From contig CDRNST010000213.1 of the NCBI GenBank assembly GCA_977016875.1, positions 310,001 through 374,000 on the forward strand: a DNA stretch of 64,000 nt, given 5' to 3'. A program made the translations under genes and the position numbers. The notes under the pieces were generated by a model. The model saw only the letters and a list, made by a program, of their open reading frames with translations. It had not been told where the DNA came from and did no database searches. The DNA comes from Pavona decussata. Its lineage: Eukaryota. Numbering within the stretch: position 1 is the first letter of the stretch; each line of letters opens with the position of its first letter. This document shows, piece after piece, positions 44,657 to 62,776 of this stretch.

Positions 44657-47600
44657 TTATCTCGGTCTGAACGGAGGATAACGTGTATGGCAGAAATTTT
44701 CGGGCAGTGACCAGGGGCCTGGTATTAGAGGAGGAGGTGGAGTTAAAACGGGGCGACCCCGGTTTTGGCTAGGAACTGAACAGGATCTTTCCCGGTCTGG
44801 GAAACCTGGATGAACCTGTTCAAACCGCACTTGGTCCGCTCTCGGATCATGTGGACTAAGGGATCTCTGTGGGCCCCAGCGAGGATCTTCTGGAGTCAAA
44901 TGATGTCCTCTGCTATTTACGTGAAGAGGTGGAGGCTGAGGAGAACGCCAACAACGATAGGGGAGCTGCTCGTTCACTGTTCTTAAACGTTGCCTCTCTC
45001 TAATACAATGCAGCTGTGGGAATTGGTGGTCGAACTGATCTCTCTCTGAGTAAGGTCTGTAAAAATGGTATTCTCTGTTGTAAAATTCCCTCGATGACTC
45101 CCGCGCCTTATGTTCGCGCCATAATCCACTCTCCAAAGAGACCAGTGGTGGTGGAGGAGTCAACTTCGGTCGCTTTCTTCCCTTTTCAAACATTTGTTTC
45201 CCCCACCATTCAGGTTCTGATGGAAGCTTCCTCTTCATATTTTGTATCCTGTTGTCTCTGTGCAAATGTTTGATATCTCTCAAAGGTTCAGTTTTCACCC
45301 GAGTATCTCTGTAAAGAGCAGCACAATCATTATTTGTGCTCTTTTCTCTTTGGTGGTGAGCCTCAAAGTTTTTAGACGAACACGGCCCCATCAAAGAAGA
45401 GTGGAGTGCTTCTAGTTTCTTGGAAGCTGCTGCAGAGGACTTTTCGTCCTTCGCACCCTTTGCACTTTCTTCCGTAGATTTCACAGCTGTTTTAGATGAG
45501 CTAGCACTCTTTAACTCAGTGGTTTTAAGTGACTCTTCTCCCTTAACAGTGCTTTCATCCACCTTGCTGTCCCTCGCAGTTTTTCCACTTTCCAAAGTAG
45601 ACTGCCCTGTTGTGTCTTGACTGTGACTCTTTACCTCAACGCCTTTAACTGTCTGAACAGCCTCCACAGGTTCTATTTCCAGCTTTTTGACGTTGGGAGC
45701 CATTCTGTTTTCTTCCGTAGATTTCACAAGTAAGTCGTCTGTTTTATATGGGCTACCACTCTTTACCTCGTTGTTTTTCTCTGATTTCGCCGCCTTCATG
45801 TTCAGCATGGTGGTAGTAGAGCCTTGGCTATTTTTGCTTTCATTCCTCCTTCTGTCTGTTGTCAAAATCTTCGCTTTAGTTGAGACTGCGGTTGCCTCGG
45901 TTAATGAACAGCCCGTTGTGTTTTCATGAGGAATTTCCCTGCCATTTTCGTTTTTGGAAAGCTGCACATTCCCAGAGCAAATCTTATTTTCCACGCTCTC
46001 TGTGACATTTTCAAGACGTGCCAGTTTCCCTTCCATGGCTGCTGAGCTCTGCGATGAACAACACAACTTCACTGATTCCGATCCTTTTTTCGTTTCCATT
46101 TCAATGTCTATTTCTTTCTCCTTTTCATCTGTTAAGCAGGGCACCTTCTCTGACAATTTCACTTGTTTCTCTACTTGTGTCACATTATTAGGATGCTTCT
46201 CCTCTAACAGGTCCGACAAAGAAATCCTTTCTCTTGCTATGTCAAATGTGTTTATTTCATTTTCTTGCTCCTGAAGTGAATGCAACCTTTCTCTCTCTCC
46301 CTTTTCTGAGCATTCCTCAATTCGATGGACTTCACACGACCATTCTTCTGGTTTCATCATTGTATTTCTCTCTAATATATGAGTGAGATTCAGATTCTCG
46401 GGAGCTGCAACTGATCTATGAGGTGAAGCCGTTTTCGTGCAGCATTTTTCCTTCTTAGGTGAGTCAGAGAAAGACGTCTCTCGTGTCTGAGGTGTCACCA
46501 AGTTCTCAGGATCGATCGTGAGCGTTTCTTTTGTTTCTTCTACGTAGTTTGGCTTTTGTATTTTTAAAATACCACCTAAACAGTCTTTCTCGCAATTTTG
46601 CAATTGCTTACAGGAACTGTCTACTGCCATGACGTCTCCATTTACACATCCGAGCGTCCCGAAAAATTCATTTACGAATTCGAAATTTGTTGATTCTTTG
46701 ACAAGACCTGGCGCGGATCCTGCATTTTTGACTGCCTGTGAATCTACACCGCATGACTCATTGGTATCCCTTTCGTATATTGAACTTTTACCCTCGTTGC
46801 ATTCCTCAGGTGGGCATGTTTCAGGCACGTGTTTTTCCATAGACGACACGCCTGTTTCCACATCTAAATTCGGGCAAAGCACGATCTGTGGTACTAGAGC
46901 ATGCCATTCACAGGTGTTACATTCATCTTTTGAACTCGCATCTTCGATGTGTTCCTTACTTGGCCTTGCTTTAGACACGAGTTCTTCCGAAGGCGGCAAC
47001 ATTGTTTCCGAATTAACACCCGGGGGCAGCACGAGCTCAGGTACCACACCTCGAAATCTCTGCTCGACAATGGCGGTCTCCTCCTGAATTGTTCTTGTTA
47101 TGTTCTCACCAGTAGCGTGATCATGGAAACCAGAATGTCCTGGAAACCTAAACGAGAACGTTTTTGACGGCGCTGCTGGCGAACACACCACGGCTTCCGG
47201 TTCCGAAATGTCGCAATCCTCAACAGCTCGCCAGGCTGCACCTGTGCTTGATGCAACAGCTTCATTTGTGTCGATAGTATCTTGCTCCATATCTAGTTGA
47301 CAAGACCTCTTTACTTCGAGTTGCGCTTTACTGCAATCGTCAGCACCCCCTTGAAATCCCCAGTCTTCTATTAACGACATTTCAACAACGCCACCCAGAC
47401 AAGAAGTTGCTTGCTCTGGTAGACCACTGACGTCTTTCTTCAAAGCGGTAGAACTGACAACGGGTGTTTTAAAGTCCGTTGCTGAAGACGCGACAGCATT
47501 CTCCACCCCTAAAGAATCGATATGTTCCAACGTTTCGCCGTTAGAGTCGTTGCTGCGTGTCACTGATGGACTAACAGTCAATATGCGTGACATGTTGCTG

Positions 47601-62600: not shown

Positions 62601-62776
62601 TTAAAGCATTCAATAAGCTTAAATATGTGGCAAAGTTGAAGTTGACAAAGTCTTACAAATAATTATTCTTTCAAATTTCCTAAAATTTAAGCTTAAGCTT
62701 ATATATGCTTACCCTCCGACGGTCTTCTCTCCTTACGCGGTATTTTGAACGGGCGATGGAAACCAAGAACGTCCAT
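44657..62776 (-). CDS. TASOR: TASOR/TEX15-family protein (DUF3715 pseudo-PARP + SPOC-like domain + ~2000-aa low-complexity tail), ~2398 aa; exons 62776-62713, 59914-59514, 58305-58156, 57379-57200, 56364-56237, 55110-55019, 53290-53181, 52078-52006, 50655-44657
   Basis: The spliced N-terminus reads FKIPRK..SREAKEI..NPNLERDYHEKKAELREEGRLPKEL..LAF..EICRIGL..LGDGDMGV..PDL..LLVFK|IVKGRVK..LEPTPNHDCHIS..TQ|YYLYEY..KRPRQCLPFAVISL, which follows the TASOR/TEX15 DUF3715 motif order. It continues AWRGLV..SYLDVSRKISLKEL..AGVLC..MFLVP..RMFCIV, which is SPOC-like. Phases 1,0,0,0,2,1,0,1 are consistent and total 7197 nt. Confidence 0.8.
53365..53638. mobile_element. Young Penelope-like insertion: perfect 98-bp inverted repeat with hammerhead core, short tail and 13-bp TSD
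   Basis: Arms 53377-53474 and 53479-53576 with spacer TCTT. Core CTGATGA-A-GGGC-TAA-GCCC-GAAAC at 53485-53508. Direct repeat TCCATCAGTAATA at 53365-53377 and 53626-53638. Confidence 0.85.
59514..59914 (-). CDS. TASOR: TASOR-like exon 2 (DUF3715 core), ending at a GC donor
   Basis: ORF 59502..59954; acceptor cacag| at 59915; donor AAG|GCAAGT at 59513. Confidence 0.85.
60740..61520 (-). mobile_element. Decayed R4/Dong-like RLE non-LTR retrotransposon 3' fragment in TASOR-like coding intron 1
   Basis: Frameshifted minus-strand peptides: LHEQLLPTRMY, CRLCGKAPESV.HILACCPALAQNKY..RHN (CCHC knuckle), SPWYSEVKPKVVYES..AFWDIP, IEMTCP, GYSV.QYNIILDV. Confidence 0.7.

Follow-up and report, generated by a model that had tools for sequence, protein, structure and literature searches.

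The 64,000-nucleotide stretch of DNA analysed here (contig CDRNST010000213.1 of the stony coral Pavona decussata, positions 310,001 to 374,000; hereafter the window) harbours on its minus strand a gene of the TASOR/TEX15 family. Its predicted product combines an N-terminal PARP-like DUF3715 domain and a SPOC domain with a very long, apparently disordered tail. The coding region extends from an ATG at 62776 to a stop codon at 44657–44659, which is exactly the span assigned in the preliminary description made from the letters alone. It comprises nine coding exons and 7194 nt, corresponding to 2398 amino acids (aa), with 83 % of the coding sequence residing in exon 9. This portion is the listed 2014-aa open reading frame (ORF) at 44657–50701, and the earlier remark that most of the gene is invisible among the ORFs was therefore mistaken. 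Exons were placed by tblastn with spliced proteins of Porites and Oculina, the closest relatives with a name, as well as transcript-derived coral proteins, and their boundaries were fixed by splice sites and reading phase. Intron 2 is GC-AG, with the donor GCAAGT; all other introns are of the GT-AG type.

The gene is real and expressed. Contigs of four runs from Logan were mapped onto 6000 bases of the window (50500–56499), and the RNA runs X1 and X9, which belong to different studies, yielded one spliced contig each (2086 and 1769 nt, respectively). Both lie on 56236–56366 (exon 5, 56237–56364, also supported by alignments), 55019–55109 (exon 6, 55019–55110), 53180–53290 (exon 7, 53181–53290) and 50500–50654 (start of the giant exon 9, 44657–50655, coding 50655–44660 plus stop). 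The joints are 53290>55019, 52077>53180 and 50654>52005, the latter two enclosing exon 8 (52006–52078). All joints have CT..AC ends, i.e. GT..AG on the minus strand, and match exons 5 to 9 of the model exactly, so that the junctions of these exons are confirmed by spliced contigs from two studies. About 816 nt of RNA contig lie upstream of exon 5, which fits the 795 nt of exons 1–4 plus a short leader; exons 1–4 and the 3′ end of the gene model are based on relatives and on this contig size. Of the words sampled from the giant exon, 97 % are present in run X1, and coral metatranscriptome runs contain part of the gene. The RefSeq model of Oculina shows the same junction residues, as does a coral protein derived from transcripts. 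A candidate polyadenylation signal (ATTAAA, 44575–44580, minus strand) was found by pattern search 76 nt past the stop codon. On the other side of the gene, a polypyrimidine tract followed by CAG (62777–62805, minus strand), 25 nt upstream of the ATG, resembles a splice acceptor, and an untranslated first exon may therefore exist further upstream.

Searches with the window protein were run exon by exon, orthologous proteins standing in for the joined nine-exon product; the joined protein itself was used only to count its length and as one row of the phylogenetic tree. Exon 1 (62713–62776) contributes the ATG and 21 residues with a basic FKIPRKERR motif and ends in phase 1 at the donor GTAAGC. 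Exon 2 (59514–59914), 78–81 % identical to coral orthologues, encodes roughly the first two of three parts of the pseudo-PARP domain DUF3715, for which the name RDTS is also in use. Exon 3 (58156–58305), delimited by its splice sites, encodes the middle of this domain with an EPTPNHDCH motif, and exon 4 (57200–57379), located by tblastn, its end (YYLYEYDDEG...PRQCLPFAV) and a linker towards SPOC. The Pfam family DUF3715 (PF12509) is matched by exon 2 at 2.4e-9, by exon 3 at 3.4e-6 and by full orthologues at 1e-27 to 1e-34. The structure of the TASOR pseudo-PARP domain (Protein Data Bank, PDB, entry 6TL1) was detected at 2.4e-7 with exon 2 alone and at 1.5e-45, over its whole length, with the profile of the clade to which the coral protein belongs, the stretch of exon 4 being included in the latter alignment. 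The domain, originally drawn over exons 1–4, was thus recovered for exons 2–4, whereas exon 1 holds just the 21 residues preceding it.

In the alignment to 6TL1, TASOR residue L184, which occupies the His position of active PARPs, corresponds to the Cys of LAFC in the coral protein, and Y217 to the Thr of GVTVW, both encoded in exon 2 (numbering checked against Douse 2020). Y217 is the sole catalytic residue retained by TASOR, and the family is catalytically inactive (Douse 2020). The NAD+-binding triad His-Tyr-Glu (or His-Tyr-x) is accordingly broken, His being replaced by Cys and Tyr by Thr. The preliminary description had regarded all three triad positions as replaced; the alignment bears this out for His and Tyr, while the Glu position, at TQYY, is inferred. 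As judged from these residues, the coral DUF3715 domain is a catalytically dead PARP-like domain. A feature search of the ESM Atlas returned generic PARP clusters only and did not separate TASOR from TEX15.

The region following DUF3715 can be aligned across corals, sponges, a nemertean, amphioxus and fish TASOR2. One Trp and one Gly, both part of a WRG motif in exon 5, are invariant in this alignment. A profile of 61 family members matches the SPOC domain of Arabidopsis FPA (5KXF) at 5.4e-10. Residues 265–428 of the Oculina orthologue were modelled with AlphaFold2 on the basis of the family alignment at a mean predicted local distance difference test (pLDDT) of 89.9, and the 13 best Foldseek matches of this model in the PDB are all SPOC domains (FPA, PHF3, SHARP, SPOCD1 and RBM15; E 1e-7 to 1e-4), with Chp1-Tas3 among the weaker matches. 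The window protein shares 73 % identity with the Oculina orthologue over 415 N-terminal aligned columns, and its exons 5–9 are 52–80 % identical to Oculina and Porites. Exons 5–9, of which exon 5 encodes the start and exon 9 the last strand, thus encode a SPOC beta-barrel directly after DUF3715, as had been supposed for these exons. The 90 residues next to the SPOC domain are rich in Ser, Lys and Arg and conserved among corals; in TASOR, the domain following SPOC is DomI, which is needed for MPP8 binding.

From SPOC to the stop codon, exon 9 encodes about 1950 residues of probably disordered sequence. Its frame (2014–2016 aa) matches no Pfam family at E≤1. Ser, Glu, Thr, Pro and Lys are abundant in the tail, and only about one quarter of its residues are order-promoting along its entire length. 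For the most conserved 451 residues, modelled with AlphaFold2 from 12 coral sequences, a pLDDT of 34.6 and two short helices were obtained; disorder elsewhere is inferred from composition. These results agree with the earlier view of nothing but low-complexity sequence between SPOC and stop. Compared to a relative at a synonymous divergence (dS) of 0.22, the ratio of nonsynonymous to synonymous substitution rates (dN/dS) is 0.65 for the tail, ranging from 0.37 to 1.05 per 200 codons, and 0.14 for exons 3–8. The tail frame of about 2000 codons is open in relatives with 26–96 % identity, including those down to 26–34 %.

Conservation of the tail among corals is limited to short blocks: the first 90 post-SPOC residues, a DMEISES motif, three central blocks and the C-terminal 230 residues. 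The acidic-hydrophobic motif (D-L-H-D-N-L/M-x-T-V/I-D-M-E-I-S-E-S) is present in two copies at 48584–48814, with a third, weaker copy at 48167–48238 (all minus strand). Each coral orthologue checked has one to three copies, except the transcript-derived protein P0053, in which the motif was not found. The three middle blocks (47144–47773, minus strand) form invariant alignment columns and read SLSPRKSPKV..RLKTLQDAF, GGV(I/V)EMSLIEDWGF and CDI(S/P)EPE.VVCSP...TF.FRFPG. The C-terminal region (44660–45343, minus strand) is basic, rich in Pro and Arg and moderately conserved, contains an RKRPK stretch resembling a nuclear localization signal (NLS), and shares its last residues with Oculina and other corals. 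Conserved tail motifs hence include the DMEISES repeats, GGVIEMSLIEDWGF and the C-terminal block. Hidden Markov models (HMMs) of the coral tail blocks retrieved nothing significant outside corals. A relaxed core of the xDMEISx type (hydrophobic-D/E-M-D/E-hydrophobic-S-D/E) occurs in four of 180 non-coral family proteins, compared to 0.11 expected from shuffled sequences; the carriers P0078, P0096, P0117 and P0204 are three PIN-bearing proteins of the vertebrate tree clade and one jellyfish TASOR-like protein. As a lead only, this core may represent a short linear motif common to these proteins, similar to a SUMO-interaction motif with acidic or serine residues after it. The tail can best be regarded as a scaffold that is disordered, evolves rapidly and carries short linear motifs.

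Fish tasor2 and the nemertean homologue terminate in TASOR_alpha-beta (PF23314) and PIN_TASOR (PF24630). An iterated alpha/beta+PIN HMM matched 98 family members and no coral tail (best coral E about 3). The stop codon and the last residues are common to the Oculina RefSeq model (P0052) and a transcript-derived coral protein, and the last 48 aa are 60 % identical in a distant coral relative (L001), in which the tail is otherwise 33 % identical (tblastx). About 8 kb downstream and on the same strand, an IRF gene begins in the window as well as in L001, indicating that this neighbourhood is old within corals. Its IRF1/2-like first coding exon (window 35795–36229, minus strand; L001 24452–24910) shows 92 % protein identity, and non-coding blocks between the two genes are conserved as well (e.g. 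43577–43660 and 36615–36801). A TEX15 domain was not detected by Pfam in the window tail, nor any Pfam domain beyond PF12509 in the orthologues and an amphioxus relative. By these comparisons the window gene is devoid of DomII/PIN. The conserved stop and the adjacent IRF gene agree with this, and nothing points to transcripts that leave the giant exon for DomI or PIN exons, which the preliminary description had named as the mark of a canonical TASOR. Membership of the TASOR/TEX15 family, as proposed there, holds with an architecture of pseudo-PARP, SPOC and long disordered tail, without DomII/PIN and without the TEX15 domain.

In the 602 Mb stony-coral assembly, DUF3715 is matched a second time, near 4.699 Mb of contig C93. 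The gene at this locus (about 4696400–4740000, plus strand) possesses DUF3715 and SPOC exons and two exons of more than 1100 codons. It is colinear with Nematostella LOC5509427 (P0149, 2507 aa) across the DUF3715 and SPOC parts, a block in between and PIN, and five small exons matching the PIN region, and the C-terminus of the Nematostella protein matches the alpha/beta+PIN HMM at 9e-51. The C93 gene is the coral orthologue of LOC5509427. A preceding result, according to which the coral genome is free of PIN domains (searches with Pfam PIN_TASOR and a nemertean PIN query), proved to be a false negative; because that search proceeded exon by exon, it missed the PIN exons of C93, which became apparent with P0149 as guide. 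An intron of the C93 gene contains a transposase-like ORF of 574 aa. Since PIN exons are present in the same genome, the PIN-bearing architecture was already in place, and the window gene represents a paralogue of the C93 gene. The suggestion that it resembles the common ancestor of TASOR, TASOR2 and TEX15 can therefore not be upheld.

A profile search of 1.84 billion representatives retrieved 685 relatives at E≤1e-3, most of which cover DUF3715 and SPOC. A tree of 51 rows, with no vertebrate TEX15 among them, was calculated with IQ-TREE under the site-heterogeneous LG+C20 model (posterior mean site frequencies, PMSF) and left unrooted. The window gene clusters with its orthologues from other corals (support 100/100), this group with PIN-less proteins of amphioxus (98/89), and both with bivalve proteins devoid of SPOC (Solemya, Argopecten and Sinanodonta; 99/98). 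The C93 gene joins Nematostella (100/100), and the canonical genes of bilaterians, including a second, PIN-bearing amphioxus gene and a Mytilus gene, form a clade of their own (100/99). Corals, amphioxus and bivalves thus each have a canonical copy elsewhere in the tree. Forcing all cnidarian rows together decreased the log-likelihood by 49.9 (approximately unbiased (AU) test, p-AU 7.7e-5), and 36 columns within the N-terminal approx. 230 residues are invariant across corals, amphioxus and bivalves. Since the corals cluster with PIN-less proteins of amphioxus and bivalves, the split of the PIN-less clade most likely predates the cnidarian-bilaterian ancestor, and the idea of a lineage-specific silencer is not supported in view of this grouping and the rejection of a cnidarian-only origin.

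The kind of gene is already known. Invertebrate TASOR-like proteins with the order DUF3715-SPOC-DomI have been described throughout Metazoa (Schopp et al. 2023, RNA 29:1471, PMC10578480), and a 2026 preprint, using the Porites lobata domain as query, reports a DUF3715-only gene in 21 of 28 cnidarians as a truncated Tex15 homologue. Public databases already list orthologues of the window gene, either as uncharacterised proteins or as 'TASOR pseudo-PARP domain-containing'. New here are the SPOC domain of the coral gene, the presence of two paralogues in one coral genome and the grouping with PIN-less genes of amphioxus and bivalves. With the TASOR-like proteins of Schopp et al. (2023), the coral protein has in common the N-terminal DUF3715 pseudo-PARP domain followed by SPOC and its considerable length; it differs in lacking DomII/PIN and in belonging to a clade separate from the canonical genes, one of which is located in the same genome. 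Vertebrate TASOR and TASOR2, the core subunits of the human silencing hub (HUSH) and HUSH2 complexes (6TL1; PF12509, PF23314 and PF24630), likewise display a pseudo-PARP domain with degenerate triad, SPOC and a long disordered middle part, and TASOR2 has a very large exon. In contrast to them, the coral protein contains neither TASOR_alpha-beta and PIN_TASOR nor recognisable regions for binding of Periphilin or MPP8, and the residue corresponding to Y217 is replaced. Vertebrate TEX15, which is largely encoded by one giant exon and acts in transposon methylation directed by PIWI-interacting RNAs (piRNAs) and in meiosis, resembles the coral protein in the extreme N-terminal position of DUF3715, the lack of PIN and a mostly disordered sequence of several thousand residues. 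Unlike TEX15, the coral protein has no detected TEX15 domain and possesses a SPOC domain, which TEX15 is not described as having. Chp1 of Schizosaccharomyces pombe, a subunit of the RNA-induced transcriptional silencing (RITS) complex, also integrates SPOC into a chromatin-silencing scaffold; it differs by its chromodomain, DomII/PIN and the absence of a PARP-like domain. TASOR has been compared with Chp1 before (Douse 2020).

Taken together, the window gene is probably a functional, expressed PIN-less member of the TASOR/TEX15 family, an old second copy that probably encodes a nuclear scaffold for RNA-directed, co-transcriptional silencing of repeats. The DUF3715 silencing domain is known from two proteins, TASOR and TEX15, and the course of their divergence is unsettled. 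The silencing role is suggested because the DUF3715 domains of TASOR and TEX15 are required for, and interchangeable in, the silencing of LINE1, those of TEX15 being able to replace those of TASOR (Schopp 2023, PMC10578480). The protein would accordingly repress transposons or other repeats, with the head of pseudo-PARP and SPOC possibly mediating silencing and partner binding, and the long tail recruiting effectors by its short motifs and NLS-like basic stretches. Whatever function the DomII/PIN module fulfils in canonical TASOR would be missing from the coral protein.

Several observations weigh against this interpretation. The members of the PIN-less clade are placed on long stems (0.9–1.45 substitutions per site), so that long-branch attraction could have joined three independent duplicates, and the clade subjected to the AU test was defined only once the tree was known. 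The tail motifs are specific to corals and were not found in the members from amphioxus or bivalves. A profile of the vertebrate post-SPOC region (DomI) matches no invertebrate, not even the PIN-bearing ones, and is therefore uninformative for corals. For the SPOC fold, the Oculina orthologue was modelled instead of the window protein, read mapping stopped short of the 3′ part of the gene, where minor isoforms may occur, and the silencing role is deduced from vertebrate relatives alone.

The first of these points leads to an unlikely alternative, according to which the gene is a duplicate of the canonical TASOR-like gene that arose within cnidarians or corals and no longer has the C-terminal domains, a long-branch artefact being the cause of its grouping with proteins of amphioxus and bivalves. 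The long stem to every subgroup, tail motifs shared by corals only and the position of the PIN-less clade on the side of the sponge and cnidarian canonical sequences in the unrooted tree would be in line with such an origin; yet the clade receives 99/98 under a site-heterogeneous model, an all-cnidarian clade is rejected by the AU test, the 36 invariant columns connect all three groups, and three independent losses of PIN would be required.

A similarly low probability is given to a role outside transposon silencing. TEX15 is also known for its role in meiotic recombination and repair, and the SPOC domains of PHF3, SHARP and RBM15 read the phosphorylated tail of RNA polymerase II. The coral protein could thus be a meiotic recombination or repair factor, or a transcription regulator the SPOC domain of which reads this phosphorylated tail. 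Its best fold matches are indeed SPOC domains binding the phosphorylated carboxy-terminal domain of the polymerase, and the 2026 preprint places cnidarian DUF3715 genes as Tex15 homologues in the context of PRDM9 and meiosis; transposon silencing is, however, the only function for which DUF3715 domains have been tested. Very improbable is a coral orthologue of TASOR, the core subunit of HUSH, with DomII/PIN exons overlooked downstream of 44657: the N-terminal module is the same as that of TASOR, but this explanation is already contradicted by the stop and last residues conserved in coral orthologues (RefSeq model and transcript-derived protein), by the IRF gene starting 8 kb downstream in two distant corals and by the canonical orthologue with PIN exons on C93. 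Least credible of all are a decaying, non-functional frame, compatible with a dN/dS of about 1 in two 200-codon windows but opposed by expression, correct splicing, a dN/dS of 0.14 in the domains and a frame open across corals, and an active ADP-ribosyltransferase, which the protein language-model features nearest to PARP catalytic domains would allow but the replaced catalytic His and Tyr of a family known to be inactive do not.

Within the preferred reading of an old PIN-less copy, the PIN-less genes of corals, amphioxus and bivalves could constitute the pre-vertebrate TEX15 lineage: one duplication before the cnidarian-bilaterian ancestor would have separated a TASOR line bearing DomII/PIN from a TEX15 line lacking this module. 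The SPOC domain of the ancestral TEX15 would have been kept in corals and amphioxus and lost in bivalves and vertebrates. This proposal is tentative, and we consider it somewhat doubtful. TEX15 has been regarded as vertebrate-specific, with an early split of TEX15 and TASOR in animals (Schopp 2023, PMC10578480), and TEX15 domains are absent from cnidarians according to the 2026 preprint. Among the best 150 matches of the family search there was no vertebrate TEX15; a word search for it with the PIN-less alignment yielded only amphioxus relatives and one fish protein with TASOR PIN domains, and no TEX15 structure was detected in the PDB with the clade profile. The source of one amphioxus protein in the clade names it TEX15, but such a name carries no weight as evidence.

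Next to the exons, three intervals of the introns attracted attention. Minus-strand open frames at 53958–54143 and 61240–61452 look like fragments of repeats or retroelements, and in every run the summed contig depth over both intervals is very high, as is typical of dispersed repeats. In intron 6, a contig of run X5, which covers introns and is therefore a DNA run, skips exactly 261 bases (53365–53625), with 12 bases common to both ends. The element at this site, described earlier as having a hairpin, a hammerhead core and a target-site duplication, is hence present in the assembly but missing from another individual. At gathering score, Rfam detected no RNA family within 43000–64000, and thus made no hammerhead call at this element.

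For the biology of corals, the gene would represent a candidate transposon-control factor with a fast-evolving tail rather than a new kind of system. The coexistence of a canonical and an old PIN-less DUF3715-SPOC gene, for both of which amphioxus and bivalves have counterparts, suggests that early animals already possessed two silencing scaffolds. If the PIN-less genes do belong to the TEX15 lineage, TEX15 would not be vertebrate-specific, and corals would offer a non-mammalian system for the study of a partner of the PIWI pathway.

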